Part shown: positions 1,434-35,556 of the stretch, in pieces
Layout of the letters: every line of letters starts with the position of its first letter
How positions within the stretch are numbered: position 1 is the stretch's first letter
Origin: Obrimoposthia wandeli
Taxonomy: Eukaryota
NCBI GenBank assembly: GCA_977020255.1
Contig: CDROCS010004705.1
Location: forward strand, 1-64,000
DNA: 64,000 bases
Reading direction: 5' to 3'
Made by a program: the position numbers and the translations under genes
The notes under the pieces: generated by a model
Database searches by the model: none
What the model saw: only the letters and a program-made list of their open reading frames with translations
What the model was told of the DNA's origin: nothing

Positions 1434-2311
1434 TCAGTAGACATTCCGTAAATAGATGCTTGAACTGTCCTTAAAGATATCATTCTCAACTATTGTAAGT
1501 GCGGTACCTGATGTAGTTAATAATCCAGGTTTAAGTACACCAGCATTGTTCTTATAAACAAGGCAGTAATCACTAGATGCATAAATCGAGTTAACTGTTA
1601 CATTTATGGTCACTGCTTTGCCTTTGTACTGGTTTTTTGAAATAAAATATTTTTGTGGATTAGGAGGATAGTCATTTTCATATTCATCCGATGTGCCGGC
1701 TACTTCACCTCCTAGACCTAAACTTTGAAGTTCAATGTTAGCTAATACCAATGTAGATGAATCATTTGGAATAGTTAAAGTAGAGCCATTATTAAATTTC
1801 CATCCATAATTGGCATCAGGGTTGTCTTTACAGCTAGGGGAATTTTGATTCCCCAACCATCTCTGAATACTGCAATTTTACTTATGGTTTTACCATTGTT
1901 ATCACAAATTGATTTATAACCAGTTGGCCTGAGATATGGACCTTCCCAATTAGGATCATCAGTCCAATTCCCAGTTGGAGTTAATGCTTCGCAATCAATT
2001 TCATTATCTTCTTCAGAAGGAATTGAACAATGTTTATTGCTCATCAAATTCTCAATAGAAGCAGGCAGTCTCCCTGTATCCGCTATAAAACCACTAATTG
2101 TTGGTTGTCCATTAAGTGATCTTGAACTATCACCAATAATTGCATAGCGTATTTGCTCCATGCGCTGTTTAGTCGTTTCAAAGCGTTGCTGGTTTGTTTC
2201 GTTGATTACAAAGTCACTGGCTAAACTGGTAACTAAGCCGAGTAGGCCGATAACGACGATTAGCTCAAGTAGCGTATAGCCGCTTTGTTTTTTTGCGTTA
2301 GATCCAATCAT
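1434..2311 (-). pseudogene. Minor pilin/pseudopilin (GspG-like), split by a 1-nt frameshift
   Basis: Prepilin motif QSG|YTLLELIVVI and WEGPY motif. ORFs 1775..2311 and 1434..1856 join as RDGWG-NQNS if one G is added to the G4 run at 1851-1854, giving ~292 aa. Confidence 0.75.
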
Positions 2312-2339
2312 TTGTTTATCCTCAATACTTCTACTGTCA

Positions 2340-3143
2340 TCACGTTTCTATAGAGCAATCAACCTGGGTGGGATCTGAATCATAATCGCCATTCTTACCT
2401 AAACTGATCAGTGCAATGCATCCATTGATACTGCTTTCTAAGCAATCAGGATATAGATCATTTTTGAAACTTGTTTCATAGCGATAAGCTTGTCCTGCAT
2501 AATCATTAGCGATATTGCTTCTAGTAGAGGCCGATTTATCCTTCTTGGTTTTTACAATAGCGAAACATGAGGAAGTAGAGGTAAAAGTTAATGCTTGTTT
2601 AAAAGGATCTTGAATTGCTGAATATGAATTATCAGCATTTAAATTCCCTAAGGCTTCTAGCTCGCAATTACTTTGAGGATCAGAGCCTTTAAAATGCATT
2701 CTTTGTTGTGTGTTTCTAGTCATATAAGGGCCGAACCAGCCGATAGCTGAATCGATGTTTTGTGGAGATACTGGTGTGTCACAATCGCTGGCCTTACATT
2801 GGAGCGGCTGTGTATAAAATCAAAAATTCTGATCTTCCGATACAGTAATTGGATATTGATATGCATATTTACCATCTGGCGCAGCAAATATTCCAGTCTT
2901 TGGAAAATACCCCGTATCACTTTTAAACTTATAAATAGCATCGGCAATATTACTCATTTCAACATGCACCAGCTCTTCACGAGCTTTTTCGTTATAGCCG
3001 CCTACTGCTGAAGTGGCGATGCCGGCTATTGCCGCTAGAATGGAAACGACGACGAGTAACTCTAACAGCGTGAAGCCTTGCTGTGATGCTTTTAGCTTAA
3101 CGGTTGCTTTTTTATGAGTGTCTAAATTATGTATTAATTTCAT
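2340..3143 (-). pseudogene. Minor pilin/pseudopilin (GspG-like) with an in-frame TGA
   Basis: QQG|FTLLELLVVV motif and RBS GAGG. The frame continues past TGA (2820-2822) as FYTQPLQC...GWFGPY into ORF 2340..2723. Confidence 0.8.
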
Positions 3144-4482
3144 GCTCAACCTCTTTCTCTGCAGTGCTCTGGTTATCGTCAAGTTGCGCTTGTAATACGC
3201 GAGGTTCTCTGACTTTGAAGCCTTCTAATAGCCCCAGCACGCGCTCAACTTCATCGATATCGGTAATGCCTTGTTTTACTTTATTTAAAGCACTGCGGCG
3301 TAAATCTTGAATGTTTTGGCTTTGTGCATAAGTTTCTATTTGTGAATCACTAGCACCTTGTGCAATCAACTCTGCCAAGTCTTTGGTGATAGGTAGCACT
3401 TGATAGATACCGATACGCCCTTTATAACCTGATTCATTGTTTTGAATGCGCGCCCTAAACAAGGTTAGATCAGGGATCTCTTGCTCAGTGAAACCTAATG
3501 CCAGCAAACGATCAGTCGGCACTACAATTTCTTCAGCGTTTTCAGGGTCAAGTTTGCGTAATAAACGCTGACTTATCACTAAGCTAACCGTAGAGGCAAT
3601 GTCATGTGGGGCAACACCTAAGTTGCGTAGGCGCATCACTGATTTTGCCGCCGTATTAGCGTGTAGTGTCGATAAAACTAAGTGGCCGGTGTGGGCGGCT
3701 TTGATAGCGGTATCGATGGTTTCGCTGTCGCGCATTTCGCCCAGCATAATGACATCAGGGTCTTGGCGTAAAATGGTTCTAGCAGATTCTGCAAAACTTA
3801 AACGCTCATCAATACTAATTTGGTTGATGCCATTAAGGTCTATCTCAACAGGATCTTCTACTGTGTAAATGCTGCGTGGTTGCTGGTTTATGTGTTTTAT
3901 TAAGGTATATAAAGTCACAGTCTTACCACTACCTGTAGGGCCTGTCACTAACACCATGCCTTGCAGTTGGCTAATAGCGTTGCGTATAGCGGGTAGCTGT
4001 TGTGTCTCAAAACCTAGTAGGTTTAAATCTAACAGTGTTTCGGGCAAATAAAGTAAGCGCAGCACAATAGTTTCACCGTGCAAGGTAGGAATAGTTGAGC
4101 ATCTAAAATCTAAACCTTGTTGCTCGCTTAACAATAATTTAAAGCGCCCGCCTTGTGAAATACGGTGTTCAGAAATATCTAAACCGGCAATGACTTTAAT
4201 ACGCGCTGCTATTTGCTGGCCAAAACCTCTGGGCATTTCAGCTGTTTCTCGCATCACACCATCCACACGCATACGAATGCGAAAGCGTTCGGCGAAAGGT
4301 TCAAAGTGTATATCTGATGCACCAAAATTTATCGCATCTAATAACGTGCGATTCAGATACAAAGGGACACTCATTTCTTGATGAATCGCTTGTGCATTGT
4401 CAGTGTTATCAATGGTGCTGGCGCTAACGGCGAAATTTAAATTAGCGGGGTCGAGCTTGAGATCTTGTATGGGTAAATTCAT
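3127..4482 (-). CDS. PilB/GspE-family ATPase, short form without tetracysteine motif
   Basis: Walker A GPTGSGKT, EDPVE Asp box, RQDPDVIMLGEMRD, His box TLHAN. Confidence 0.9.
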   Translation of the reverse strand: MNLPIQDLKLDPANLNFAVSASTIDNTDNAQAIHQEMSVPLYLNRTLLDAINFGASDIHFEPFAERFRIRMRVDGVMRETAEMPRGFGQQIAARIKVIAGLDISEHRISQGGRFKLLLSEQQGLDFRCSTIPTLHGETIVLRLLYLPETLLDLNLLGFETQQLPAIRNAISQLQGMVLVTGPTGSGKTVTLYTLIKHINQQPRSIYTVEDPVEIDLNGINQISIDERLSFAESARTILRQDPDVIMLGEMRDSETIDTAIKAAHTGHLVLSTLHANTAAKSVMRLRNLGVAPHDIASTVSLVISQRLLRKLDPENAEEIVVPTDRLLALGFTEQEIPDLTLFRARIQNNESGYKGRIGIYQVLPITKDLAELIAQGASDSQIETYAQSQNIQDLRRSALNKVKQGITDIDEVERVLGLLEGFKVREPRVLQAQLDDNQSTAEKEVEHEINT

Positions 4483-4521
4483 ATCTAATACCTGTTATAG
4501 CTAAAGGTGATAGTCCACAGA

Positions 4522-5751
4522 CTAACCAGCAGAGACTTTGATCATGGCAGTAAAGAAACCAATGTAGACAAATGCCACCATGCCGCCGACGATAATAGTC
4601 ATCGCGGGTTCTATCATTGATATCATCGCTTTAATACGGGATTCAGCGCTTTGCTGGTAATACTTACCAAGCTCTAACATCACGTGCTCTAGCTCACCGC
4701 TGCGCTCACCAATGCCTGTCATGTGCTGTACCATCAAAGGAATATGAGATTGTTGTAAACCGTAAGCTAAGCTGCGCCCAGCAAGAATTTCACTGCCAGC
4801 TTTATCAAAACAAGCAGCTAAGCGCAGGTTGCCCGTGATGCTGTGCATAACTCGAAGCGCCTCGATTACCGTAAGGCCTGAGCCTAATAGCATTGACATA
4901 GTCCAACCCATTTGAGCCATACCTGAAGTGCGAATGCTAGAGCCTATCAAGGGTGTGTTTAGCAGTATTTTATCAATCACTTTTTTACCGGGCAAAGTGG
5001 TGTAAGCGGCTAATGCGCCAAAGACAACCACCCCAATAGTGATACCTAAAATAGCACCGTAGTTAACTAACCAAGCTGATACATCTAACATGGCTTGGGT
5101 AATAGGCGGCAAGTCAACCGCTTTGCTTTCAAGCATTTTGGCAAACTTTGGCACAATGCCTAAAGATAAACCTAAAAATACTGCAACAGCGGCTGAAAAT
5201 AAGATACCTGGGTAGGTAAGGCTTGAAATGAATTGGCTTTTCACTTGAGCGCTACGCTCTAAGTTATCGGCCAGACGCTCTAGCGTGGTTTGTAGTTCAC
5301 CCGATACTTCGGCGGCGGCAATTAATTTAGCAGCAATTGGTGGAAACATGCCTTTTTGCTGCTCAATAGCGACTGAGAAACTCGCGCCACTTTGGATGCT
5401 CACTAAGCATTTAACCAAGCTGCGTCTAAGTAAGTTGTTCTCGGTCATTTCACCGCAAATTTCTAAACCCTGTGTTAAGGTATTGCCTGAGCGAATCATT
5501 AACGCTAACTGCCTAAACATCATCACTTTTTGAGCTGATTTAGGTGACCGATATTGGCCAGGGCTTAGCTTGCCAAGTAGGTTAAACATCAACTTAAAGG
5601 GATTAAAACCACTGGCAGCAGCTTTGATATTTAAGATGTGCAAAGACTTACTGCGCAACTGAGCGCTCGCTTCATTTACGCTGGTCGCACTAATACGACC
5701 TTGGGTTTCTTTACCTTGTTGATCTAAGGCTTTGTATTTAAAAACGGCCAT
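4522..5751 (-). CDS. pilC: PilC/GspF-family inner-membrane platform protein
   Basis: MAVFKYKALDQQG start, FRQLALMIRSG, GERSGEL and IEP motifs; duplicated T2SSF architecture. Confidence 0.9.
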   Translation of the reverse strand: MAVFKYKALDQQGKETQGRISATSVNEASAQLRSKSLHILNIKAAASGFNPFKLMFNLLGKLSPGQYRSPKSAQKVMMFRQLALMIRSGNTLTQGLEICGEMTENNLLRRSLVKCLVSIQSGASFSVAIEQQKGMFPPIAAKLIAAAEVSGELQTTLERLADNLERSAQVKSQFISSLTYPGILFSAAVAVFLGLSLGIVPKFAKMLESKAVDLPPITQAMLDVSAWLVNYGAILGITIGVVVFGALAAYTTLPGKKVIDKILLNTPLIGSSIRTSGMAQMGWTMSMLLGSGLTVIEALRVMHSITGNLRLAACFDKAGSEILAGRSLAYGLQQSHIPLMVQHMTGIGERSGELEHVMLELGKYYQQSAESRIKAMISMIEPAMTIIVGGMVAFVYIGFFTAMIKVSAG

Positions 5752-5877
5752 AGGCTAGATGCTCTCTTACTATAAAATTAAGCTGCATCATGGTAAGAAA
5801 AACTTGCCATCAATAGCAGCACCAAATGTGCTAGTACTAGTAAAAAATCTGGCTGGCGGTAGGCTGGCTGGCAGGAT

Positions 5878-7476
5878 TTAGGCGTGATATAAAAGCTCTG
5901 CTTCATGCAAAGTGGTCACGCCTTCAAGTACCTTGTTGCGGGCATCCTGCCATAATGTATTTAATAACTCGTCCTTCAGTGCTTGTTGTTTTAATTGCTC
6001 ATCACTGGCATTTTGATGAATAAGTTGTTCTAAATTTTTATTCATCCACAATGTTTCGTAAATACCAACACGTCCACTATAACCACTGCCCAAACACAGT
6101 GAACAGCCGGCTCCTTTGTACAAGGTGAGCGGTGCTTTTACGGCCAATAACGCAATCTCTTGATCACTGGCGGCATAAGGTTGTTGGCAGTGTTTACAGT
6201 TGCGTCTTAACAAACGTTGCGCCACAACACCCACTAAGGTGCTGGCTATTAAGTAGCTCGCGCAGCCGATATCAATTAAGCGGTTAATCGCTGATACCGC
6301 ATTGTTAGTGTGCAAAGTAGACATCACCATATGGCCAGTCATCGCGGCGCGCACCGCTGTTTCAGCGGTTTCTTTATCACGAATTTCACCCACTAACATG
6401 ACATCAGGGTCATGGCGTAAAAACGAGCGAAGCGCGCTTGAGAAGCTCAGTTTTTCAGTGACTTGTATTTGAGAAATACCTTCAATAACTTGCTCAATAG
6501 GGTCTTCAACGGTCATGATATTCATCTTTTGCGCATCTAATTCACGTAGTGATGCATACAAAGTGGTACTTTTTCCGCTACCTGTAGGTCCTGTCACTAG
6601 CACCATGCCATAAGGTTTTTTAATGCCTTGTTGCATGGGTAACAAAAGATGTTGAGGCATACCCAGTTGCGCTAAACGCATGTCCGCTGTGCTTTGCCCT
6701 AAAATACGCAAAGTGGCGCGCTCACCAAAGCGGGTAGGGATAACGGCTACACGCATTTCAATGTCACCGATATCAGCCCAGTTATTGATACGATAAGCAA
6801 AGCCGCCATCTTGCGCAGTATTTTGCTCAGAAATATCCATCCCAGAAAGCACTTTAATACGGCTCATTAACGCGTTGGCTAACTCTTTATCAATAGGGCG
6901 TTCATAATGTTGCAAGCGCCCATCAACACGCACTCTTAATTGCATGCTGTGCTCTAGTGCTTCAAAGTGTAAATCAGTGGCTTGGCGTAAATACGCTTCT
7001 TTCATAATGTCATCAAAGATACTAATGGCATTAAAATCGTTGGCGTATATGCCAAAGTGCTGGCGCAAAATAGATTCAATCATCATAGGGTCAGCTATTG
7101 CTAAGCTAGCTCTTTCATTAAGGCTGCGTTGCACTGTCTCTAAAACCACCTTATCTAAGGGGTCAGCGCTGAGCACTACCAGTTTTTCATCAATACGAAT
7201 CGGTAAAAATAAGCGGCGTAATATCACTTGGCTGTTGAACGGATTAAGCAGTTTGGCTGAAATTTGAAAGTCATCGCGGCTGTAAAAAGGCAGTTGGTGG
7301 CTACTGGCTAAAGCACGGTAAATAGCGCTCATCGGAAAACGCCCTTCGCGACAAATAAGCTCTAAGCTTGATGCATTTTGCTGACGCGCTTTAGTTTTTA
7401 GCGTTGCAACTTTATCAGCAGCCACTAAACCTGCTTGCACAGCAGCATTAATTAATAGTGTTTCTGATACAGCCAT
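5878..7476 (-). CDS. pilB: PilB/GspE-family extension ATPase
   Basis: Walker A GPTGSGKST, RHDPDVMLVGEIRD, TLHTN, zinc motif CKHC...CSLC; N-terminal domain present. Confidence 0.9.
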   Translation of the reverse strand: MAVSETLLINAAVQAGLVAADKVATLKTKARQQNASSLELICREGRFPMSAIYRALASSHQLPFYSRDDFQISAKLLNPFNSQVILRRLFLPIRIDEKLVVLSADPLDKVVLETVQRSLNERASLAIADPMMIESILRQHFGIYANDFNAISIFDDIMKEAYLRQATDLHFEALEHSMQLRVRVDGRLQHYERPIDKELANALMSRIKVLSGMDISEQNTAQDGGFAYRINNWADIGDIEMRVAVIPTRFGERATLRILGQSTADMRLAQLGMPQHLLLPMQQGIKKPYGMVLVTGPTGSGKSTTLYASLRELDAQKMNIMTVEDPIEQVIEGISQIQVTEKLSFSSALRSFLRHDPDVMLVGEIRDKETAETAVRAAMTGHMVMSTLHTNNAVSAINRLIDIGCASYLIASTLVGVVAQRLLRRNCKHCQQPYAASDQEIALLAVKAPLTLYKGAGCSLCLGSGYSGRVGIYETLWMNKNLEQLIHQNASDEQLKQQALKDELLNTLWQDARNKVLEGVTTLHEAELLYHA

Positions 7477-8552
7477 TAGCTAAATCCGCGCTGTAATAAT
7501 TTGTTAAAGCTTTCAGGGTCTTTACATAAACGTTGCGCCGCTTCAATTGTAATTGCTTTGGCAATGGCTAAACGCGCCAGTGCTTGGTCTAACGTTTGCA
7601 TGCCTTGGCGGCTGCTGCTTTCCATCACTGAGTAAATTTGTTTAGATTTTGATGATTCAATTAAATTGGAAACCGCATTGGTCACCATTAAAATCTCAGC
7701 CACTACTTCACGACCATTACCCCGTGCAGAGGGAATAAGGTTTTGTGCAATCACCGCTTTTAGTGCATGGGCAATTCGCTGGCGTGCCACGCTTTGCTCG
7801 TTACCTGGAAAACTACCAATTAAACGTTCCACCACCCCTACTGCGTCATTAGTATGTAAGGTTGAGAACACTAAATGGCCAGTTTCAGCGGCGGTTATAG
7901 CGGTGCGCATGGTATCTAAATCGCGCATTTCACCAATCATAATCACATCAGGGTCTTCACGTAGTGCCGCTTTTACGGCGCTGGGGAAATCAAGCACATC
8001 AGTGTAGAGCTCTCGCTGGTGAACAATAGAGTTGATATTGCTATGCACAAACTCAATTGGGTCTTCTACGGTTAAAATGTGTTTTTCTTGGTTTTCATTA
8101 ATGTCATTTATAATGGCGGTCAAGGTGGTGCTTTTGCCAGAACCTGTGGCGCCGCAGACTAACACTAAGCCGCTTTTAAGGCTGGTTAAATAACTGATTT
8201 GTGGTGGTAACCCTAGCTCTTTAGTGGTTTTTAAACCGCCATCAAGGTAGCGAATAGCCAGTGCAATAGTCCCCATTTGACGATAAATATTAATGCGAAA
8301 ACGAAAACCTTGCGCTGATGAAAACCCCATATCTAAGGTCATATTTTTCTTGAAATACTCGAGATGGTGGGCATTCATTAAGCTGTAGGCCATCGCTTCA
8401 ATGTCATCAGCCGTTAATGGCGTTACATCGATGCGGGTTATTTTGCCATGAATACGATAAGTAGGCGCTAAAGCGTGTGATATATGTAAATCGGACGCTT
8501 CAAGAGAGACGCAATCGTCCATTAGCTGTCGAATATATTGATTGTTATCCAA
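7476..8552 (-). CDS. pilT: PilT/PilU-family retraction ATPase
   Basis: GATGSGKST, LREDPDVIMIGEMRD, AAETGHLVFSTLHT, GMQTLDQAL. Confidence 0.9.
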   Translation of the reverse strand: MDNNQYIRQLMDDCVSLEASDLHISHALAPTYRIHGKITRIDVTPLTADDIEAMAYSLMNAHHLEYFKKNMTLDMGFSSAQGFRFRINIYRQMGTIALAIRYLDGGLKTTKELGLPPQISYLTSLKSGLVLVCGATGSGKSTTLTAIINDINENQEKHILTVEDPIEFVHSNINSIVHQRELYTDVLDFPSAVKAALREDPDVIMIGEMRDLDTMRTAITAAETGHLVFSTLHTNDAVGVVERLIGSFPGNEQSVARQRIAHALKAVIAQNLIPSARGNGREVVAEILMVTNAVSNLIESSKSKQIYSVMESSSRQGMQTLDQALARLAIAKAITIEAAQRLCKDPESFNKLLQRGFS

Positions 8553-8616
8553 AGTGTTTAGCCTTAAGTGATCGTTGCACGCTACTTGTTATGGGAAAGT
8601 TACTATGTAAAAAGTG

Positions 8617-9261
8617 TTACATTTGCAAATCAAAGGTGATTGCCAATAAGCCGTTATTAGATGCTGCAGTTGCATCATCTTGAATTATGGGTGTAATACT
8701 TAAATTGCGCACAATGCTGTAATAAGGCAATTTAGAAAACTGCTCAGTGAAATTAACAAAGGCAGGGTAAGAGCCTTGGCCGCTCACCCGAAAGATGGGC
8801 CTTTTCTCTAGAAATGCGCGCAACTGTTGGCCATTAAGCGATTTAGGTAGTGGCCTTATTTGCGCATTATCAGTGGTTAAATTGGTAATAATAATGCCTT
8901 GCTCGGCTGCCATACGTGAGAGCTCTAACTTTACTTTTTCTTGTGGTGTAGGTACATCTAATGGCAGCAGCTTAGCGCTATAATTTATTAATTTTCGCTC
9001 TAATATATGCAGCGCTTTCTGCTGGCTATCTAAGCTTTTTTGAGTAACGATGCCATCAATTTCGGGTGTTTTGAAAGTACCTAGGCGTGTCTCTATGCGA
9101 TTAGCTTTACGATTAGCCATTTTTTGCGCTTGAAACATTTCTTCCCACAGTAGTGATGCCAGTAATCCATAGCTGCCAACAATAGTGAATATAATAATAA
9201 ACAACAGTTGCCTGCGCTCTTTTGCTTGCATTGCATAAAAGCGATTTTTTAAGCTAATCAT
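8617..9261 (-). CDS. PilO/GspM-like alignment protein
   Basis: Single N-terminal TM after ERRQLL, coiled coil, ferredoxin-like C-terminus (GSYPAFVNF); follows pilMN. Confidence 0.6.
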   Translation of the reverse strand: MISLKNRFYAMQAKERRQLLFIIIFTIVGSYGLLASLLWEEMFQAQKMANRKANRIETRLGTFKTPEIDGIVTQKSLDSQQKALHILERKLINYSAKLLPLDVPTPQEKVKLELSRMAAEQGIIITNLTTDNAQIRPLPKSLNGQQLRAFLEKRPIFRVSGQGSYPAFVNFTEQFSKLPYYSIVRNLSITPIIQDDATAASNNGLLAITFDLQM

Positions 9262-11275
9262 TAATTTGCACCTCTAGCTCGGTGGCATTGTTAGCGGATT
9301 CTATCGGGGTTTGAGGTAGAGCATTGCGCATTTTGTTACGCAGGTTTGATTGATAATCCAAACTGACTTTTATTTCATATAATTGGTTATCGGTTAGTGC
9401 AACGCTTGAGTGTGTTACTTGGTAATTAAGTGGTTGTAATAAGCTGTTTAAACTATTGATAAACTCATTACCGGTTCGGTTATCTAATGTGTTGGCAGTA
9501 ATAGACCAAAGGTCATTTGATTTAGTGATTTGGGTTAACACTATTTGTGGTGATACAGATAACGCCAAGGTCTTTAAAAACACAGGCGTCACTAGACGGC
9601 GATAACCACGCTCTTTTTCAAGGTCAACCAACATGTTGGTTGTGGCTATCGTTTCACTAGTCACCAAGGCGAAGCTGGTTTTCATATTCTCATTTTGAGT
9701 AAATATAGCGCGCAGCTGTTTTTGTAATTTATCCTCTTTTGAAAACTTTGCCTCTAAGGTTGCTAATCGTTTGGTTTGTACATCAGTATTCCAAAACATC
9801 CAGCTGATAAAACCGATCGCAGCGACCCCTACAATAGAGCCCGTTATCATCATGATTACTTTAGGCTGCAATAGTCGTTGTATGACAGAGACTTTCGCTT
9901 CTTGGCTGTTAATCCAACTTAAACGCGTATTAGGAGTGTGTTTTAAATAATGATTGGCCGCGCCTTGTAAACCTAATAGGGCATCTTTAGAAATGTTAGG
10001 CAGTATCAGTTCGCTTTTAGGTGCACTGAATCGTTGAATATCACATCCTAAACTATTCGCCAGCTCACTCATCAAAGGCGTTAAACTTTGGTTACTACTG
10101 TCAGCGATATAAAGACGGTGTATATCACTGGGTAAAATACCGATTAAATCAAGGCAATCTTGAGCGGTTACTGGGCCAAATTGACGTGCAGCGGTGGTTA
10201 TTTCGGTCACTACATTACGGTTGCCGCTAATCAGTGCGATTTGCTCTTGGTGAATCTCTAATAACAGTTGCTGATCTTGATCACTGTGATGCCAAAGATT
10301 AGCAAACGCGCTACCTAAAGAGGGGTAAAAGGCTTCTAAATGAATATTATTAAGCTTAAAAGCACCAAGCCAGCGACGGCGTACACTTTGGCTAATACCA
10401 CTGACTAACCAGGGGTGGCTACTATCACTGTCTTCTTCTTGTGAAAGTAAAGTTTCATCACTGAGGTTATCTTGTTTAAGCTCACTTGCTTGCCAGCCAT
10501 AGACTAAATCATCGTCAATCGCGACCAGCTTGCCCTGCAAGGTAAAGCACTCTTCTAGTTGCTCTCTGTTGATGTAGCCAAGCTGTACTGCCAAATCACC
10601 AAAGCGGGTCAGTGAGTTAGAACCGCCTTGAGTTTGCCTAAGTTGTAGCTCTTCAACAATTTCATCACGTTGATCAGAGGTTAAATTACCGCGCTCAACC
10701 AGCATTGAACCTATCATCCAATGTTTGTTTTGCTGGCTCATCGCGCCTTCTAGTTCCCAGCGAATCAGCTCTTGCATCTGCTCGTTAGTACGCGGGCGTA
10801 GTGGGCTGACTGGCAATTGTACTAAGGCTGAGACAACAGAGGGAGTCAGTAAAATAGCGTGTTTTGGTAAGCGCTTTTGGTGCTGCTTTAGCTCAGTTAA
10901 CACATCGGCAATTGCACGGGTGAAATCTACCGTGTTAGATTGCGCAACATGAATAATATGTGCTTTTTGTTTGCCGTTTCTGATTAAGGCGCCGCGTAAA
11001 CCAAAGCTGCCTGCCTGAAACGCAATCAGTGAGTAAGACTCGCTCATTAAAGAGGAGAAGTTAGGCAAGCGTAGCGATTTTTTAAGTTTCATCGCGCTAG
11101 CAGCGAGCTCAATATCAAAAGGCTGCTCTTTGGTTTTGCTAAGTGCAGCACTGTCCTTGCTATCAGCTATGGGTGCGCCGCCGCCAGGTGCAAAGGGATT
11201 TTGCATCTCAAAGCTAAATTCAGTACTGCTATGCGCATCATTATGTGATGCTTGTTTAGGTAATACTTTACTCAT
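9254..11275 (-). CDS. PilM-PilN-like fusion with internal MshEN-like motif pair
   Basis: PilM-like N-terminal ~450 aa, TM at about VIMMITGSIVGVAAIGFISWMFW, PilN-like C-terminus; start chosen at the ATG overlapping the upstream stop. Confidence 0.7.
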   Translation of the reverse strand: MSKVLPKQASHNDAHSSTEFSFEMQNPFAPGGGAPIADSKDSAALSKTKEQPFDIELAASAMKLKKSLRLPNFSSLMSESYSLIAFQAGSFGLRGALIRNGKQKAHIIHVAQSNTVDFTRAIADVLTELKQHQKRLPKHAILLTPSVVSALVQLPVSPLRPRTNEQMQELIRWELEGAMSQQNKHWMIGSMLVERGNLTSDQRDEIVEELQLRQTQGGSNSLTRFGDLAVQLGYINREQLEECFTLQGKLVAIDDDLVYGWQASELKQDNLSDETLLSQEEDSDSSHPWLVSGISQSVRRRWLGAFKLNNIHLEAFYPSLGSAFANLWHHSDQDQQLLLEIHQEQIALISGNRNVVTEITTAARQFGPVTAQDCLDLIGILPSDIHRLYIADSSNQSLTPLMSELANSLGCDIQRFSAPKSELILPNISKDALLGLQGAANHYLKHTPNTRLSWINSQEAKVSVIQRLLQPKVIMMITGSIVGVAAIGFISWMFWNTDVQTKRLATLEAKFSKEDKLQKQLRAIFTQNENMKTSFALVTSETIATTNMLVDLEKERGYRRLVTPVFLKTLALSVSPQIVLTQITKSNDLWSITANTLDNRTGNEFINSLNSLLQPLNYQVTHSSVALTDNQLYEIKVSLDYQSNLRNKMRNALPQTPIESANNATELEVQIND

Positions 11276-11849
11276 CAATGGCTTGTGCACCGATAATCAC
11301 TAAACGCGGCCCTTTAGCATAATTATAAATATGCATGGCGTACAACAAGCTGTTAACTGGGGTGGTAATAGTTGAATCAGTGGTTTTGTAAGCTTTGGTT
11401 TTGTGCTTTTTTTGTGCATCAATTAATTGCTGCATCTGTACTGCTGCGCTTTTGGCGACATACACCGCGATTACTTTGTTATCTCCCGCTTGTATAAAAG
11501 CGCTATGGCTAATTTCAGGTAATGGCTGCTCTGATGGCCATAATTGCAAGGCATCATAAACCAGTGAGAATTTGCCGGCTTTAGGTGCTTGCATGATGTT
11601 GGCATTAAATTGAATAGGCGAGGGCGGCAACATTAAGCGCTGCTTCGCTTTAATCATTTTCGCAGGTAACTGGTTGTTATTGATAAAATCTGCCAAGTTG
11701 ATTTTTTTATACTGTTGGGTAATATTTTGTGCGCTAGTGTCAGCAGAGGTTGAAATAGTGTTTTTAGCGGAGCCGTCGGTAGTGGAAGTTTGAGCGTAAC
11801 TAAAACTAGTGCACAAAATACTGAAGGTAAATAAAAAAAGATACTGCAT
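11268..11849 (-). CDS. Hypothetical exported protein of the pilus operon
   Basis: Signal peptide ending SYA; stop overlaps the pilMN start. Confidence 0.7.
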   Translation of the reverse strand: MQYLFLFTFSILCTSFSYAQTSTTDGSAKNTISTSADTSAQNITQQYKKINLADFINNNQLPAKMIKAKQRLMLPPSPIQFNANIMQAPKAGKFSLVYDALQLWPSEQPLPEISHSAFIQAGDNKVIAVYVAKSAAVQMQQLIDAQKKHKTKAYKTTDSTITTPVNSLLYAMHIYNYAKGPRLVIIGAQAIDE

Positions 11850-11873
11850 CTTTGAGTCTCTATAAGCGACTAA

Positions 11874-11893
11874 ATCGACAGTAAACTGCCGAT
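11874..11893 (-). terminator. Hairpin downstream of major pilin (partial terminator or mRNA stabiliser)
   Basis: Minus-strand stem atcggcag/ctgtcgat with a 4-nt loop and weak U-tract. Confidence 0.45.
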
Positions 11894-11928
11894 CTAGTAC
11901 ATGGTATTTAAACGTGAGCCACTATTAT

Positions 11929-12951
11929 TTAGATAGTGTTACGTGTGCCATCCCACTCGCCTAACTCTTCTTCTTTAGTATCGCCAGCGCCATCAACGAT
12001 AGCAGTAAGTGCTACTTGGTCATTAGGTGTTATGACAGTACCAGCAGTATCTAACGTACCGATATTGAACAGTGCAATAAATCGATTATACTGCTGACCA
12101 GAAACGTGTCTGTATACCGGCACAGAAGTCAAACCACCTAAATCGTTAGCGTTGAATAAGCTAGAAGATGGGCCTAATCCAACAGCCATAAGTGCTGGAC
12201 GGGTTGTAGATGTTACAGGAGTTACGTCAAATAGAACGCCTGCGCCGCCTAATACACGCTCATAGCCACCATTCCAGATAGCAACACTAGTTGTATCTCC
12301 AGCATTTACGACTGCACCTGCCGCATCCAGAATCTCACCGTCTTCATCAAAAGCTACAGAATAGCCGCAGCCATTTGCGAGAGGACTCATAAATATATTA
12401 CCAGCAACTACTGCGTTACCACGCGAGGCAATTAGTGCAGGTATATCACTACAGTCGCCTGCGTCAGCTGGGTCTGCAAGAGCATCAGCATGAAGGTAGC
12501 GTAAGCTATTGATACCACCAGCAGACATTACAGAAGCCACAGCAACTGGAAGTGTAACAACATCGAAGTCAGCAATAGCAATAACATCATTAGGTACTAC
12601 TACCGGTGCTTGGCCATCTGCTGCCGGTGTTTGAAGTAACGCGTCAAAGTTAGTAGGTAGCACATTTCTGTTAAGTACACGGAAGGTACGAATACCTTTG
12701 TTTAACTCATCCATCATTGCTACGTGTGCAGCTGCTGATGCACGTGCATCAGTATCTTGTAGTGCGATAGTCGCAGTACCGGCAATTGCCGCTAAGATAG
12801 CCACTACTACTAATAGCTCTAGTAATGTGAAACCGCCTTGTTTTGCTTTAAGCTTAGTAGCTTTAGCACGAAGGCCTGAATCTGCGATGTCAGATGTGTT
12901 GATTGAAGAGAATTTTGCTTTAAGTTGGGCAATTTTTGCTAAAGAGAACAT
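11929..12951 (-). CDS. Large type IV major pilin-like protein (340-aa prepilin)
   Basis: KQGG|FTLLELLVVVAIL class III signal peptide; RBS ATAGG before ATG 12951; first pilin after the promoter; followed by a hairpin. Confidence 0.85.
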   Translation of the reverse strand: MFSLAKIAQLKAKFSSINTSDIADSGLRAKATKLKAKQGGFTLLELLVVVAILAAIAGTATIALQDTDARASAAAHVAMMDELNKGIRTFRVLNRNVLPTNFDALLQTPAADGQAPVVVPNDVIAIADFDVVTLPVAVASVMSAGGINSLRYLHADALADPADAGDCSDIPALIASRGNAVVAGNIFMSPLANGCGYSVAFDEDGEILDAAGAVVNAGDTTSVAIWNGGYERVLGGAGVLFDVTPVTSTTRPALMAVGLGPSSSLFNANDLGGLTSVPVYRHVSGQQYNRFIALFNIGTLDTAGTVITPNDQVALTAIVDGAGDTKEEELGEWDGTRNTI

Positions 12952-13221
12952 GGTAAACCTATAAGTTAATAAATCGAAAGTTAGTAGACCGTTGACATAA
13001 GCGCAGACTTCCCCCAAGGAAGCTGTGGCAACTTAACCAGTCCGATTTAAAACGCTTCCTTTGGCAGTGTTGATAAATATCCTGCTATTAACACTGTCGT
13101 TTCAGCTGATGTCCTTGTCAGCCTACCTAGTTCTTTTTACCCCCCAAGAGCAATAAAAGAACGTTAAACCTTCCTAAGCTACAGCTTAATGAAAAATAAG
13201 CTGATTGCTTTAAACCTTTCT
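12952..13221 (-). promoter_or_regulatory. 270-nt structured leader upstream of the pilin
   Basis: Four stem-loops (13130-13162, 13105-13122, 13065-13096, 13014-13064); six GGA triplets, two of them in loops. Confidence 0.5.
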
Positions 13222-13482
13222 TTACTTAAGCAAGTCACGCTTTAATAGATGCTTTAATGCTGATTCATTGACTAACGCTTGATCGCAATCAAGTACAAAG
13301 CGATGCTGCTTACCACAGTGAATAATGACTTCTTTTTGACCACGACGCAGAATTTTCATCTCAATACTAAAGTCACCATAACCATCGTGACTAAAAAGCT
13401 CTGAATAGACTTCTATCAGCTTTTCAAACACATCTTTATGTTTAATATCTTGATTAAGTTGAGTGTCTGCTACTTCGTTCAT
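13222..13482 (-). CDS. Small 86-aa protein, first gene of the pilin transcript
   Basis: ATG ~30 nt below the promoter; ordered-looking core LFSHDGYGDFSIEMKILRRGQKEVIIHCGKQHRF. Confidence 0.75.
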   Translation of the reverse strand: MNEVADTQLNQDIKHKDVFEKLIEVYSELFSHDGYGDFSIEMKILRRGQKEVIIHCGKQHRFVLDCDQALVNESALKHLLKRDLLK

Positions 13483-13507
13483 GGCTAAATTGTTTCCTGT
13501 ATTTGAT

Positions 13508-13543
13508 GCTAGTGATTATCATTCGTATTTGATTTTTTGTCAA
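13508..13543 (-). promoter_or_regulatory. Strong sigma70 promoter with Fur box over the -10
   Basis: TTGACA (13543-13538), 17-nt spacer, GATAAT (13520-13515). ACGAATGATAATCACTAGC matches the 19-bp Fur consensus at 14/19. Confidence 0.8.
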
Positions 13544-13590
13544 TTTAATTTTCATAAATATGACGATTTATTTTATTTTTTTCCTCTAAC

Positions 13591-15684
13591 CTATGGTTTT
13601 CTCGAGATTAAATACACATAACTAGTATCAGTGATGTTGTTGTTGCTGACATCTTTTGCAGCAAGAAAAGGCTGCTCTCTTGCTGCGCTCAGCCAGCGAC
13701 CAGGTAATGACTGTAAATTGATAGGCTGGCTTACATTGCTGGTGTTTTTAAGTTGAAAAACACTGATGACTAGCTTTTCTTGCTGATAGCTGGCGATAGC
13801 ATTGCTGGTAATGTTTGGGTTGGAAAAAAGCTTAGATGAAGCTGTAGGTAAGGGCGCTGAAACTATGCTGTTATCTTTAGGTCTATTGCCACTCATTGCC
13901 ATCGCGGCGTAGCGATTTAAGTAAAGGTAGCTTTCTTTTTTACTGCGCTTAGCAGTGATTTCTGTTGCGAAAAGCACTAATTTGAGCTTTACTAGCCAGA
14001 TTTTATTAGAAGCATTGCCAGCTTGGTGCCAAGCTGGATTGCTGTTAGGATACGTGCGGGTGATTAGCATAATGTATTGCGATTTACTTTTGCTTTTGCT
14101 TTCAGAGCTGAAGAGTGCCTGTTTACCGGGATGCCGCCAAGGGGAGATCTGGTATAGTACGGGTTGCTAACTCAATATCGCTATTCGACGGTTGTGACAA
14201 TGTTATTTCCCCACCTAAAGCGATAGTGGCACCATTTTTAGCTATTGCGACCGTTCGAATACTAGATTCTTCATAACTTGGCAGGTCTTGCGTTGTGATG
14301 GTGGCGTTTGTGGCATCCCATAGTGGATATTGCAGGAAACCATGCCGCTTTCAATAATGTTATATTATTTGTTGAAAAAAATATCTAATGGTGACTTTTA
14401 CTCCTGCGTACGCTTGATGCTAGGTTGTATTGCTAGGGTATTGCCTATATCTACTTCTTTAACTGATAATGTCCTGTTGTCAGAGCTAATGGTTTGGAGA
14501 GAGAAAATCATACTGTTGCCTGCATCAATTGTTGTGGTTGAAGTTGAAGCAGGTGTTATGCCTGTGGCTATGATTTGTTTGTTGCCAATAAATATTCTAG
14601 CGGGGCGGTTGTTTGATGCTAATAGTAAAGGTTTAGTAATAGTCGTTACTAAATTTGTGCGCTCAAGCGCTTCGAGGCGAAGATTGATGTATCTGCTGTA
14701 AAATTCGTAAAAGCCACCGGTCGCGGCTGCTAGCCCTAATCGTGTTCTTTGAGTATTTCTAAGAATCTCCCCTTCACTTAAAGCGGGGTCATCGTCAAAA
14801 TCTAAACCTAAACTGAAAGATTTGTCGTTTGTATTGGTGATGCGGATGATTTTAGTTTCTAGCAATACTTGTGGCGTAGGTCGATCACTGGTGCGAATTA
14901 ATGAGGCTATTTCGCTCATGGCTTCTTTATCACTAGTACGAACATGAATTAGATTGTGGATGCGGTTAGTGGCAATAAAAATAGGTGTTTGAATGCCTAA
15001 CTTTTTATCGAGATCATTTGCTGAGATATTGCTCGCTTGAGCGTTGCGTAATGCGCCATCGCTTACCTCGCCTTGAGCTTGCTGCTTTATGGTGGCGTTA
15101 CTGGCTTGATCTCTTTGAGTGGTGTCCACCGTCGCAGTTGAACTGTTGCTGGATGAAGTGCTGGTACGGGTGTCAGTTACAGTTGTGTTGCCAGAAACTC
15201 TGAAGCTATCAGATAAACCATCAAAGTCATCTTGCTGGTTTTGCTGTTTAAGGATGACACGCTCACCAAATAAGCTTTGTATTGTTAAGGCGGTGGCGCG
15301 AACATTTTGATGTTTTAGAGTGAATGAGCGAATAGTGTCATTGCGATAAACCACGATGTCGCTCTGGTATTCACCTTTCGTCATAATTAAATAACTGTTG
15401 TTTTCGCTATTTCGGCGATACCAAAGGCCGGTGATGCGCGATAAGGTTTCAACAGCATGTTCAAGGCTGATATTTTGCAATAGTAAATCAACGGTTTTAT
15501 TGCTAGCAGCTTGAGTGACGGTGATATTAGAATTGCTTAAGCTTGATAAAATACGCGCGGCATCACGTATATTGGCCCCTTTAAGCTCAACTCTATCAAG
15601 TTGCACGCCAAAGGCTTGCGTTGCTAGTAGTAATGAAAAAACGCAGATGCTTATTATATTGGTTAAACGTGTTAGGTAAATCAT
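13591..15684 (-). pseudogene. Secretin (PilQ/GspD family) with probable C-terminal DUF3438/TraK-like domain, broken by multiple indels
   Basis: N0/N3 and secretin motifs in 14398..15684. Secretin C-terminal pieces (TVAIAKNGATIALGG, LGGIPV, LFSSES...YIMLIT) lie in three frames in 14071-14326. ORF 13591..14070 is in the original frame. Confidence 0.75.
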
Positions 15685-16257
15685 TTATTGCACCACCATC
15701 TTTTCTTTGTAGCTACCGGTTTCAACGATAATATTTAATTCATTAATTTCTAATATGTGCAGTACAGCTGAAGAGCTACCTACTTGCCTTATACCTACCT
15801 TGTCGCCTACTTTGACAATAAAAGTGCCTTGCCCCTGGATTTTTAATAAGGCTATTTTCTTCTCACCTGATTGCAATATACCCTTAAAGCTCAAAGCGGG
15901 TATCTCGCCTTGAAATTGGGCCGGTGCGCTTTTATTGCTAGGCGCACTGTTAGTAGCAGTTGGCGTGAATAGCGAATCTTTAATGGCTGCATTAGCTGCT
16001 TTAGCATTGGTTAGCGTGTTGGCAAAAGGGTCTCTTGATCTATTCGCAGATCTTTTGTTGAGTTGTTGGTCGATGGCTTGATAGTAAGCTTCTATTGTTT
16101 GTAATGAACTTTGGGTGCCTAAAATTAAGCTGTTGGCATCAGCAAAAGATGATGAGCAAAAACAAGCTAAAATGAACAGGCAGGCAATTTTTGAGCGACG
16201 TATTACGTACCGCTTTGTAGTGGATATTTGCATAGTGTGTTGCGCGCTAGTAGCCAT
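15685..16257 (-). CDS. PilP/GspC-like exported protein
   Basis: Signal/TM segment, RDPF motif, C-terminal beta domain LSFKGILQSGEKKIALL...IVKVGDKV; directly before the secretin. Confidence 0.55.
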   Translation of the reverse strand: MATSAQHTMQISTTKRYVIRRSKIACLFILACFCSSSFADANSLILGTQSSLQTIEAYYQAIDQQLNKRSANRSRDPFANTLTNAKAANAAIKDSLFTPTATNSAPSNKSAPAQFQGEIPALSFKGILQSGEKKIALLKIQGQGTFIVKVGDKVGIRQVGSSSAVLHILEINELNIIVETGSYKEKMVVQ

Positions 16258-16429
16258 TTTTTATCTGTAACACCGATGAAGAGATTGCAGTTTTGATACA
16301 AAATTTATTTTGGTGAAGCATTGGCTAGAACATGTAGTGCATTTTCAGCATACAGCTTGGCTAGTTATTTTGTGTTCATAAACAGCTATTTAGCTTAATA
16401 TTCTAAGCGAACAATAGTGGATGGCGGGC

Positions 16430-16474
16430 ATTCTATAGGTTAAAAAATATAAATCAACATGATAATCATTATTA
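16430..16474 (-). promoter_or_regulatory. Fur box overlapping a putative sigma70 promoter for the secretin operon
   Basis: CAACATGATAATCATTATT (16455-16473) matches the Fur consensus at 15/19; minus-strand TTGATT-16-TAGAAT. Confidence 0.7.
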
Positions 16475-16708
16475 TTTGCATTTGTATTGTTTTGTTCTAT
16501 GAGCTGTGGCAAAATCCGCTGGTATTTAAGATTAATGCCTTTTTTGATGTTTGAATTATTTAAGATTAACCTTGCGAGATTGTATGAAATCTCCATATAT
16601 AGATATTTCGAGCTTGTATTGCGGTGTGTCTCAATAAGCTTTAGTTTTAAATTGCGTTAACAGCCTAGCTATACACACTTTAATTATTGAGATTTAGAAA
16701 GCTTCATT

Positions 16709-16930
16709 ATGAAAAAAATGAGTCAAAAAAAGATATCATCAACCGTTATATTGTTATTTATGGTTATTTTTAGTTCAGGTTGTGCGAGTCAAGGGTGGCA
16801 AAAATTTTCACCTCAAAGCGTAGAGCAAAAAGCATCGGCTAATACCAGCGGTAAAGTAAAGCAGCAGTTAGAGGTGTTTATTTTTGCAGAAGGTGAGCAA
16901 GCTGCTAGCCAAACAGTGATTGATATTTAA
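16709..16930 (+). CDS. Small lipoprotein
   Basis: Basic N-terminus, hydrophobic stretch, lipobox SSGC. Confidence 0.55.
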   Translation: MKKMSQKKISSTVILLFMVIFSSGCASQGWQKFSPQSVEQKASANTSGKVKQQLEVFIFAEGEQAASQTVIDI

Positions 16931-16986
16931 TTGCCAAATATTTTTCGATAGAGAATTGTAGCGTGCCAAAATTTTGCTGTATAAAG

Positions 16987-17937
16987 ATGTTTTTTATTAA
17001 CAAATTGACAGCTGGCATTGTTTTTATAATAGTCACTAATGTGATGACTATGAGCAGTATAAAAGCAGAAAGTTTAGGTGGCGTCGCGTTGGGTATTTCG
17101 CAAGGTGTTGAGCGTGCGAAATTAGATTGGAGTATTGGTGGAACTGCACCGCTGCCTAATGTGATTTCTGAATTAAAATGGCAAGATTTACGCATTTATA
17201 AAACGCAAATTGACAGTGAAATTTGGTTTGAAAACAGCTTGGTTGTTAGTGCTTCGCTCAGTAAAGGGCGTGTGGTTAGTGGTAGCGTGAGAGATTCAGA
17301 TTACGCGCAAAATGATCGACAAGCTGAGTATTCTCGCTCTATTTCTAAAGCGAGTGGTAATACAAAAAGTAGCAGTGTTTCGCTAGGTTCAAGGCGATTG
17401 TATTTACAGCCACGCTCAGGGCGAGTGATGTCATTGACGCCTAAAATAGGTTATCAGTTTAACCAGCAAAATTTGACGGTGACGGATGGTAAACAAATAA
17501 TATCGGGCATCGGTAATGTGTTAAATCCACAAACCAAAATAAGTGGGTTAGATAGTAGTTACCAAAGCAATTGGCGTGGACCTTGGTTAGGTTTAGAGTA
17601 CAGGGCACATGGCGAAACACAGCAATTGATCGCTGTGTTGAAACTGCACCGAATGCGCTATAAAGGATTAGGTAACTGGAATTTACGTGATGATTTTCAG
17701 CATCCTATTAGTTTTGAACACACAGCAAAAGCACGTGGTGTGAGCTTAGATATTGATTATGAGCGACGTGTGGCTAAAAATATTTGGGCACAATTAAAAC
17801 TTAGCTATCAGTCGTTTGTGACAAGCACAGGAAATGATACGACTTTCTTTGCTGATGGTTCGGTGAAAACGATAGATTTGAAAGAATCTAGCTGGCAAAG
17901 TTTAGGTTTGCAATTAGGGGCCGTTGTCAGATTTTAG
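16987..17937 (+). CDS. Omptin-like outer-membrane beta-barrel protein
   Basis: Signal peptide, SELKW and RDSDY motifs, alternating beta-strand pattern, C-terminal Phe. Confidence 0.6.
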   Translation: MFFINKLTAGIVFIIVTNVMTMSSIKAESLGGVALGISQGVERAKLDWSIGGTAPLPNVISELKWQDLRIYKTQIDSEIWFENSLVVSASLSKGRVVSGSVRDSDYAQNDRQAEYSRSISKASGNTKSSSVSLGSRRLYLQPRSGRVMSLTPKIGYQFNQQNLTVTDGKQIISGIGNVLNPQTKISGLDSSYQSNWRGPWLGLEYRAHGETQQLIAVLKLHRMRYKGLGNWNLRDDFQHPISFEHTAKARGVSLDIDYERRVAKNIWAQLKLSYQSFVTSTGNDTTFFADGSVKTIDLKESSWQSLGLQLGAVVRF

Positions 17938-18134
17938 AAAACTTAAGCTTTAAAATTTAAGTTATGCGCTTTTTTATATTGTATTATCAGCGTCCTTGGG
18001 GGATGTGATATTGACAGTAAAAATTTATAGCATTGAAACTTAACATCGCTATCTGTGTGCAATTTTGCTGCGCAGTGCGAGTGGTTTTGTGCTGTTTTTA
18101 TTCACTTGTTAATATTGACCTTAGAGGCCCTCAA

Positions 18135-19652: not shown

Positions 19653-19787
19653 ATAAATAACTATAAATATTTATCTAGCTTCATCCATATTTAAATAAAA
19701 ACTATTCAGACTTTAAGCCGCCCAGTGCATGTTATTAGTAACTGCACTTTGAGCGGCAAGGGTAAAGTTTATTATCAAGGTTGTTTT

Positions 19788-20735
19788 ATGAACGCAGTTT
19801 TTGATGCTCAATCTCATTCTATTTGCCCACTTATGCAACCAGCGGCAAAGCAGTTAAACACACTCGTGCTAGGTAAGGAGCTGCAAATAAAACTCTCTTT
19901 AAGCTGCATATTAGCGGGTGGGCATTTGTTGATTGACGATTTGCCGGGGATGGGTAAAACAGTGCTTTCTCATGCTTTGGCTAAAGTTTTCGGGCTAGAT
20001 TTTAAGCGTGTGCAATTTACGAATGACTTGTTACCCGCTGATTTACTGGGTGCATCCATATATCAGCGTGAAAGCGGCACGTTTAATTTTGTTAAAGGCC
20101 CGGTGTTTTGCGAGCTATTGCTTGCCGATGAAATTAACCGTGCAACACCTAAAACACAAAGCGCGTTACTTGAAGCAATGGAAGAGCGGCAAATCAGTGT
20201 TGAAGGAAAAGCGCTTGCGTTACCTTACCCTTTTATTGTGATAGCCACTCAAAACCCGAATGATCAGTTAGGGACGTCGCCGTTGCCTGAATCACAGCTA
20301 GATAGATTCATGCTGTGTTTGTCGATGGGCTACCCAGACAAAGAGGCAGAGCTCGCTATTTTGGCCGGGCAGAGCCGTCGTGAATTACTGGCACAGCAAA
20401 GTGCGTTGATTGATCTTAAGCAGCTACGAGATTTTCAAGAGCAGTGCAAAGCGATTGAAGTACCAGCATTAGTGTTGGAATACATATACGCACTACTTAC
20501 TTACACACGACAAAGTGAGACTTTCATCGCTGGCTTATCTACACGCGCAGCACTAGCAGTGATTAGTGTAGCGAGAGCTTGGGCGTGGTTAAGTGGTGAT
20601 GCGATATTGATGCCGCATCATGTACAAAGTGTCTTTGCTTATGTGGCAGGGCACCGTTTACAAAATGCACAAGGCAATGGCATTGGCATTGAGAAATGCT
20701 TGGCTATTATTGATCACGTTGAGATTCCAAGATAA
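19788..20735 (+). CDS. MoxR-family AAA+ ATPase
   Basis: DLPGMGKT, RVQFTNDLLPAD, LADEINRA, ATQNP, LPESQLDRF. Confidence 0.95.
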   Translation: MNAVFDAQSHSICPLMQPAAKQLNTLVLGKELQIKLSLSCILAGGHLLIDDLPGMGKTVLSHALAKVFGLDFKRVQFTNDLLPADLLGASIYQRESGTFNFVKGPVFCELLLADEINRATPKTQSALLEAMEERQISVEGKALALPYPFIVIATQNPNDQLGTSPLPESQLDRFMLCLSMGYPDKEAELAILAGQSRRELLAQQSALIDLKQLRDFQEQCKAIEVPALVLEYIYALLTYTRQSETFIAGLSTRAALAVISVARAWAWLSGDAILMPHHVQSVFAYVAGHRLQNAQGNGIGIEKCLAIIDHVEIPR

Positions 20736-23967: not shown

Positions 23968-23996
23968 AAGCCATGATTTACAAGGAATAACCGACA

Positions 23997-35449: not shown

Positions 35450-35525
35450 GTCCCATTCGTCTAGTGGTCTAGGACACCGCCCTTTCACGGCGGTAACAGG
35501 GGTTCGAACCCCCTATGGGACGCCA
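35450..35525 (+). tRNA. tRNA-Glu(TTC)
   Basis: 76-nt cloverleaf, anticodon loop CTTTCAC, CCA end. Confidence 0.98.
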
Positions 35526-35556
35526 TTATAAGTCTACGTAGTATTTTACGTTGATC

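Follow-up and report, generated by a model that had tools for sequence, protein, structure and literature searches.

The 64,000-nucleotide stretch analysed here (the window; positions 1 to 64,000 of contig CDROCS010004705.1 in the Obrimoposthia wandeli assembly GCA_977020255.1) carries on its minus strand, from 16257 to 1434, a self-contained cluster of 15 genes or gene pieces, as counted from the open reading frames (ORFs) of the window. With its pilins, assembly ATPase and platform protein, the locus is, as judged from its encoded proteins, clearly a type IV filament within the branch that comprises type IVa pili (T4aP), mannose-sensitive hemagglutinin (MSHA) pili, here MSH, and type II secretion systems (T2SS). 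Pfam and NCBIfam searches recovered on the minus strand (1434-16257) all gene types named in an earlier note on this DNA. That gene list therefore stands, on domain and fold evidence, but the cluster is not intact as the list had implied, since the secretin and both minor pilins are broken. Its parts, together with a divergent partner operon, are as follows.

16430-16479, minus strand: outer promoter-like site (TTGATT-16-TAGAAT), with a Fur-box-like array overlapping the -35 element
15685-16257, minus strand: gene A, PilP-like lipoprotein or periplasmic protein, 190 amino acids (aa); Pfam PilP match with E 4e-4, below the cutoff
13591-15684, minus strand: secretin with a C-terminal DUF3438/TIGR03749-like domain, disrupted (Pfam/NCBIfam and comparison with orthologues)
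13508-13543, minus strand: internal promoter-like site (TTGACA-17-GATAAT, 11/12), with a Fur-box-like site over the -10 element
13222-13482, minus strand: gene C, 86-aa cytoplasmic protein and family hallmark, conserved upstream of the large pilin
11929-12951, minus strand: gene D, large type IV pilin of 340 aa and candidate major pilin (N_methyl, E 1e-7)
11268-11849, minus strand: gene E, exported protein of 193 aa with a signal-peptide-like N-terminus and a conserved position in the locus
9254-11290, minus strand: gene F, PilM-PilN fusion of 678 aa (AlphaFold2 fold and Foldseek)
8617-9261, minus strand: gene G, PilO-like bitopic protein of 214 aa (weak Pfam PilO matches among orthologues)
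7476-8552, minus strand: PilT-family retraction ATPase of 358 aa (TIGR01420, 405.8 bits against a cutoff of 319.1)
5878-7476, minus strand: ATPase I, main assembly ATPase of 532 aa (T2SSE, 386 bits; MshEN, E 1e-11)
4522-5751, minus strand: gene J, PilC/GspF-like platform protein of 409 aa (T2SSF, E 4e-43; GspF model)
3127-4482, minus strand: ATPase K, second assembly ATPase of 451 aa, a PilB-clade paralogue (Pfam/NCBIfam and tree)
2340-3143, minus strand: minor pilin LM, 260 aa in relatives, here interrupted by a stop codon (Pfam and comparison with the closest relative, L001)
1434-2311, minus strand: minor pilin NO, about 295 aa in relatives, here with a frame change (Pfam and comparison with L001)
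16709-25184, plus strand: divergent partner operon encoding a 73-aa lipoprotein, a Pom-family porin, a di-haem oxidoreductase (DHOR), a MoxR ATPase, a DUF58-like protein, a TgpA transglutaminase and an FTR1 iron permease, all intact

The prepilin-type N-terminal motif (PF07963/TIGR02532) is present in three genes, and the assembly ATPases match T2SSE with 386-394 bits. Walker A and B motifs are kept in all three ATPases (PilT, I and K); ATPase I has an N-terminal MshEN/GSPII domain and a tetracysteine motif, whereas ATPase K has neither an N-terminal domain nor the Cys motif. Pilin D carries a basic leader of about 38 aa before G|FTLLE and contains one Cys pair in a mature protein of about 300 aa; clusters of 300-350-aa pilins are found in the Atlas. 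On checking the sequences, no haem motif (CxxCH) or metal motif was seen in the pilins or accessory proteins, and Pfam and the Atlas gave no lead for the 193-aa protein E.

Gene F matched nothing among Pfam and PDB sequences, and only its predicted fold revealed PilM. The AlphaFold2 model (predicted local distance difference test, pLDDT, 75) contains a PilM actin-like domain at residues 88-450, with the PilM proteins of P. aeruginosa and Thermus as best Foldseek matches (E 4e-11), followed by a helix of about 100 residues and a small PilN-like alpha/beta domain, which identifies gene F as a PilM-PilN fusion and confirms at the level of fold what had been proposed for this 678-aa protein. A helical insert within the PilM part (residues ~190-252) contains two tandem copies of a 24-residue MshEN-like motif, of the type associated with cyclic di-GMP (c-di-GMP), which are near-invariant across the family and score 25.7 bits with NF053729, below its cutoff. 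For gene G, five of 12 orthologues match Pfam PilO (best E 4.5e-5) and PilO ranks top, without significance, among PDB profiles, while three of 13 gene A orthologues match Pfam PilP (best E 4e-5). These family-level Pfam matches give weak support to the putative PilO-like and PilP-like labels.

The small protein C is the best marker of the family. It is always the first gene ahead of the large pilin, shares 57-86% identity across the syntenic loci of Oceanospirillales and Colwellia, and its profile recovers 388 clusters at 50% identity. Its predicted structure consists of one helix and three strands, for which neither a Pfam match nor a PDB fold match was obtained; its neighbours in the AlphaFold database (AFDB) and the Atlas are all uncharacterised. 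Versions of protein C with a long C-terminal tail of repeated (D/E)RR motifs occur in Nitrospina (L020:5438-5893) and in a Nitrospirota metagenome-assembled genome (MAG; L022:5665-6063). The secretins of the family (L001:7300-7679 and orthologues; window 13591-14070) end in roughly 150 aa that look like DUF3438/TIGR03749, a domain of integrating conjugative elements; for the secretin of a type IV filament this is an unusual extension.

A search of 5.8 billion clusters detected no more than 68 homologues of the PilMN protein, all of them without a name. For comparison, 34 related genomic loci (L001-L034) were retrieved. The full order A-secretin-C-D-E-F-G-PilT-I-PilC-K-LM-NO is kept in 15 Oceanospirillales loci from Neptunomonas, Motiliproteus, Neptuniibacter, Pontibacterium, Amphritea and an Oleiphilaceae MAG, so that the synteny test suggested earlier for homologous loci returned a conserved arrangement. 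Intact copies of the locus are present in the cultured species Neptunomonas japonica (DSM 18939), Motiliproteus coralliicola (C34) and Pontibacterium sinense and in Neptuniibacter spp. Colwellia (L015, L016, L018) shares the same order with MoxR-DUF58-TgpA inserted between the secretin and gene C, a position that hints that these three proteins act with the machine. In loci from Nitrospina, Nitrospirota, Methylophilaceae, Gemmatales and an anammox MAG, the core is rearranged and includes a single assembly ATPase. PilT is present in the locus of every relative. No prepilin peptidase was detected by tblastn in the window, as previously noted, or in the 34 related loci, and by analogy with MSH this enzyme may be encoded elsewhere in the genome. 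Beyond these loci, the gene immediately after C encodes a pilin of about 315-365 aa in all four sampled contexts of sufficient length (L043, L046-48, L050 and L052), and further pilins, an F-like protein and ATPases follow on the longer contigs; L049 and L051 are too short for the gene downstream of C to be annotated. The hallmarks of the family are the 86-aa protein followed by a long-leader pilin of about 340 aa, the fusion of PilM to PilN together with the MshEN-like insert, the DUF3438-like tail of the secretin, PilT within the locus and the lack of a prepilin peptidase there.

In comparisons with models of described systems, ATPase I fits those for GspE (452.9 bits, cutoff 630) and PilB (TIGR02538, 448 bits, cutoff 675) about equally without reaching either cutoff. 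ATPase K is closest to PilB (TIGR02538, 499 bits, cutoff 675), platform protein J scores 265.6 bits with GspF (cutoff 424), and the secretin scores 42 bits with PilQ (cutoff 284) and 28.9 bits with GspD (cutoff 351). In a tree of 53 ATPase sequences with a small reference set, the I-type ATPases of the family form one clade (Shimodaira-Hasegawa-like approximate likelihood ratio test, SH-aLRT, 99) apart from GspE (E. coli, Yersinia, XcpR), PilB/PilF/HofB and Aeromonas MshE, although the separation from MshE involves a single long-branch reference and the deep nodes are unresolved. The K-type ATPases, confined among the loci compared to Oceanospirillales and Colwellia, likewise form a clade (100), whose sister group comprises Acinetobacter PilB and Neisseria PilF. 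Within this small reference set the main assembly ATPase falls into a clade of its own, apart from the GspE, PilB and MshE references, and the gene order, recognised early on as non-canonical, differs from those of T4aP and MSH and is conserved in relatives.

The locus resembles that of the MSHA pilus (msh of Vibrio and Aeromonas), a T4aP-derived branch (PMC6668835), in being a single locus without a prepilin peptidase gene, in having an ATPase with an MshEN/GSPII N-terminal domain, in its fused or adjacent PilM/PilN-like proteins and in a c-di-GMP-type motif within the machinery. However, the TXSScan model for MSH requires mshM (PMC6668835), and neither an MshM-like (ExeA-type AAA) nor an MshN gene was identified among the cluster ORFs with Pfam and NCBIfam, whereas a genuine MSH locus (L035) carries both. 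Furthermore, tblastn comparisons of F, G, A and the secretin with Aeromonas MshI/J/K/L gave no match at E<=0.01. The locus also differs from MSH in gene order, in having PilT and a second, PilB-like ATPase, in placing the c-di-GMP-like motif in the PilM-like protein instead of the ATPase, and in its large long-leader pilin and Fur-boxed 86-aa gene. With canonical T4aP (pilBCD, pilMNOPQ, pilT) it shares a PilT above the family cutoff, an ATPase (K) in the PilB/HofB clade, the PilM fold, and PilO-like, PilP-like and secretin components. In contrast to T4aP, a single locus contains all genes, PilM is fused to PilN, the main ATPase falls outside the PilB clade and below the PilB equivalog cutoff, the secretin has a DUF3438-like tail, and the pilin combines a 38-aa leader with a mature length of about 300 aa, whereas T4aP have a short leader and a small major pilin.

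A T2SS-like machine that exports an iron-scavenging protein (the 193-aa protein or the di-haem protein) under iron starvation, without any surface pilus, is an alternative that we regard as quite unlikely. Its appeal lies in the marginally better scores of ATPase I and platform protein J with GspE/GspF than with PilB/PilC models and in a single locus with three pilin-like proteins; the GspG-like N-termini of the pilins are a further likeness to T2SS. However, the scores lie far under the equivalog cutoffs, ATPase I falls outside the GspE clade, the candidate major pilin is 300 aa when mature and has a long leader, and no equivalents of GspC/L/M or GspH-K were detected among the cluster proteins with Pfam and NCBIfam. 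The retention of PilT, above its family cutoff, in the locus of every relative likewise makes T2SS-like secretion less likely. Membership of MSH, T2SS and canonical T4aP was rejected on defining features, namely scores, gene content and the tree, which leaves an undescribed subtype of type IV filament; a literature search found no description of this system.

Both apparent promoters of the cluster, which are sigma-70-like, overlap Fur-box-like sites, as had been proposed: the outer site (16455-16479, 15/19) covers the -35 element of TTGATT-16-TAGAAT and the internal site (13508-13526, 14/19) the -10 element of TTGACA-17-GATAAT. The window as a whole contains nine sites scoring at least 14/19, against 2.7 expected. 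The outer promoter lies in a 450-nt divergent intergenic region common to the cluster and the plus-strand Pom/DHOR operon. To assess conservation, the 300 nt upstream of orthologous genes were compared with composition-matched shuffles. Among 14 Oceanospirillales loci, a Fur-like box was significant (p<=0.04) upstream of gene A in 13 and upstream of gene C in 10, and it was also significant upstream of C in five of six distant C-family loci, some of them on contigs with 52-59% GC. Homologues thus possess the boxes whose absence the earlier note had named as evidence against its proposal. Of the two conditions for refutation that the note had based on sequence, grouping with a described subtype and lack of the boxes in homologues, neither told against the proposal when checked. 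Neptuniibacter (L009) has the same layout of TTGACA-17-GATAAT and box at the internal promoter, and its divergent neighbours are DoxX, an aldolase and an enolase-family enzyme; as these are not iron genes, the outer box there belongs to the pilus operon. In the Neptunomonas and Motiliproteus loci L003-L005, additional Fur-like boxes (~15280-15390) are located between the genes for ATPase I and PilC, which suggests a third iron-regulated start in some relatives.

It is very unlikely that the boxes are chance matches in AT-rich promoters, or serve the DHOR operon only, and that the filament is not iron-regulated. The matches reach just 14-15/19, intergenic DNA is AT-rich here and the outer box lies about 200 nt from the first gene in the window, all of which such an explanation would accommodate. 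However, shuffled upstream segments rarely attain the observed scores, and the boxes are also kept at the internal promoter, on GC-rich contigs and beside divergent neighbours unrelated to iron, a conservation that makes chance matches unlikely. By comparison across loci, putative Fur control of the cluster is well supported.

The genomic neighbourhood is also related to iron. Domain annotation of the plus-strand operon (16709-25184) bears out the previous observation that a di-haem protein (DHOR) and FTR1 genes flank the cluster, and in 16 of the 19 loci that were informative MoxR and/or DHOR adjoin the filament genes, in three arrangements (upstream divergent, downstream or inside the cluster). 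A ferric-type ABC transporter and a multicopper oxidase adjoin the locus in L046-48, and a ferritin in L050. Together, the boxes and neighbours are comparative evidence for a probable functional tie to iron handling, rather than for the action of the filament itself. The Candidatus Manganitrophus plasmid CP114559 (L042) encodes a different single-locus filament system with a 553-aa PilM, two very large pilins, two assembly ATPases, PilC and PilT, and a ferritin-like gene directly past PilT.

On the other side of the cluster, two small RNA (sRNA)-like elements lie on the minus strand at 126-300 and 826-995. They are 84% identical over 171 nt; both begin with a Fur-like box (13/19 in one, 14/19 in the other) and have a strong terminator hairpin. 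Rfam searches at gathering and permissive thresholds returned no family for them, and no counterpart was found beside the pilus locus in other genomes. The putative twin Fur-boxed sRNAs described earlier are thus confirmed as a pair of similar elements with Fur-like boxes, but they are neighbours of the filament system and not parts of it. A 60-aa membrane-like ORF (555-737) lies between them. Elsewhere in the window, a tandem array of eight tRNA genes (35450-36491) alternates between two types at a spacing of about 100 nt, and a separate pair of identical tRNAs is located at 61821-61997.

Three genes of the window copy are disrupted. The secretin is read in its main frame from 15684 to 14401, where a stop codon (14398-14400) ends it, in another frame from 14350 to 14126, which alone makes the conserved core readable, and again in the main frame from 14166 to 13591. 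This arrangement implies either four frame changes or two in-frame stops combined with two or more frame changes. Pilin LM contains an in-frame TGA (2820-2822) and pilin NO a frame change directly past its conserved DGWG motif (about 1856-1869). What had been taken for two minor pilins plus small ORFs is accordingly two genes, each broken, which in the closest relative L001, an Oceanospirillales MAG with 73% identity in the PilMN protein, are single ORFs of 260 aa and 295 aa. The L001 secretin is a single ORF of 698 aa with a full Secretin domain (110.8 bits) and the DUF3438-like C-terminal domain, and that of Neptunomonas (L004) is alike. Orthologues of the secretin and the minor pilins are all intact, and the other cluster genes of the window equal their L001 orthologues in length. 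No split genes were found in the remaining ~47 kb of the window, judged by ORF lengths and spacing alone and not by homology. The secretin, which diderm systems of the filament superfamily require in functional form, is intact with a full Secretin domain in the orthologues and disrupted in the window copy. With the secretin and both minor pilins disrupted, this copy is unlikely to build an external filament.

The three disrupted genes could instead be artefacts of assembly or strain mixture, with the system intact and functional in the living bacterium, which we consider possible though distinctly less probable than decay. The DNA comes from an animal genome assembly that includes bacterial pieces, in which the bacterium is a passenger at low coverage, and four disruptions inside 300 nt would be odd for natural decay. 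One public run contains this DNA at thin coverage, with 69% of the sequence words of the secretin stretch present and only 8% of those of the pilin stretch (1780-2900). Its contigs match 13550-13957 and 14511-15700 exactly but break at these points and do not match the segment between, and one continues past 13957 with related but different sequence. For the segment 13958-14510, the site of the secretin disruption, the contigs suggest a second strain or allele or a misassembled stretch. As the reads of the run miss this segment, the lesions are unconfirmed by reads. Against an artefact, one lesion is a base substitution to a stop codon that involves no insertion or deletion, and all three damaged genes belong to one system, whereas no split gene was seen, by the same ORF lengths and spacing, in the other ~47 kb. 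The substitution and the confinement of all lesions to one functional unit favour real decay, and the copy in this genome, as assembled, is most likely a recently inactivated remnant.

We hypothesize that the locus represents an undescribed single-locus clade of type IV filaments that is Fur-derepressed and PilT-retractile, likely serves iron-related contact, and is inactivated in this genome, a composite reading to which we give about even credence. Under iron-replete conditions, Fur-Fe2+ would occlude the -35 element of the outer promoter and the -10 element of the internal promoter, and under iron starvation both promoters would fire. ATPase I would then polymerise pilin D on PilC inside a PilMN/PilO/PilP scaffold, pushing it through the secretin, assisted in Oceanospirillales and Colwellia by the PilB-like paralogue K, and PilT would retract the filament. 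The MshEN-like module in PilM may gate this activity by c-di-GMP. The likely purpose would be to attach to iron-bearing particles or surfaces and pull them in, alongside DHOR, MoxR-DUF58-TgpA and FTR1.

Several points weigh against this hypothesis. The Fur consensus that was scored is the E. coli-type 19-mer and not a matrix specific to the lineage, and the outer box, located in a divergent region, could mainly serve the DHOR operon in this genome. The reference set of the ATPase tree consists of one MshE, three GspE and three PilB-type sequences. Strain mixture or misassembly at the secretin segment is possible, given the run contigs that skip or diverge from it. Moreover, a role in iron contact or uptake follows from regulation and neighbours and is thus guilt by association.

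The main rival is that iron is only the cue, and that the filament serves as a pilus for adhesion, colonisation or biofilm formation, which low iron (a proxy for host or particle-poor conditions) induces and which takes no direct part in iron uptake, the iron genes being co-regulated neighbours. Fur commonly controls functions unrelated to iron, PilT-type pili typically serve adhesion and motility, and the missing CxxCH and metal motifs in the pilins and accessory proteins fit such a role. Nevertheless, diverse iron-related genes stay linked to the filament through rearrangements and in distant lineages, and in Colwellia MoxR-DUF58-TgpA sit within the cluster, so that we regard this alternative as tenable but clearly short of probable. 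At the other extreme, the system might be a dedicated iron-acquisition organelle, a Fur-derepressed and c-di-GMP-gated pilus whose retraction would bring iron colloids, minerals or proteins to or through the specialised secretin for processing and import by DHOR, MoxR-DUF58-TgpA and FTR1. We consider this improbable; if true, it would give type IV filaments a function that had not been assigned to them before. In Legionella pneumophila, the major type IV pilin PilA2 aids growth at low iron, seemingly via a separate iron-uptake pathway and independently of pilus assembly, PilD and PilT (PMC13170364). PilA2 is a precedent for a link between a pilin and iron, not for a dedicated machine with Fur boxes, as no dedicated Fur-boxed filament locus is described there, whereas here the whole machinery has Fur sites.

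The classification of type IV filaments comprises a few classes that have been studied, while hundreds of the systems detected are still labelled 'generic' (PMC6668835). The locus described here marks out one of these unstudied classes: its hallmarks are clear, its iron-repressor signature is conserved and its association with iron genes is persistent. The family is widespread in marine and other bacteria, as indicated by the 388 clusters of protein C. That the copy in this animal-associated bacterium is broken hints at a niche in which the system can be dispensed with. Iron limits marine bacteria, and little is understood of how they use particulate or colloidal iron. A pilus induced by iron starvation would be a concrete, testable candidate for such use, and as intact copies exist in several cultured species, the idea is directly testable.

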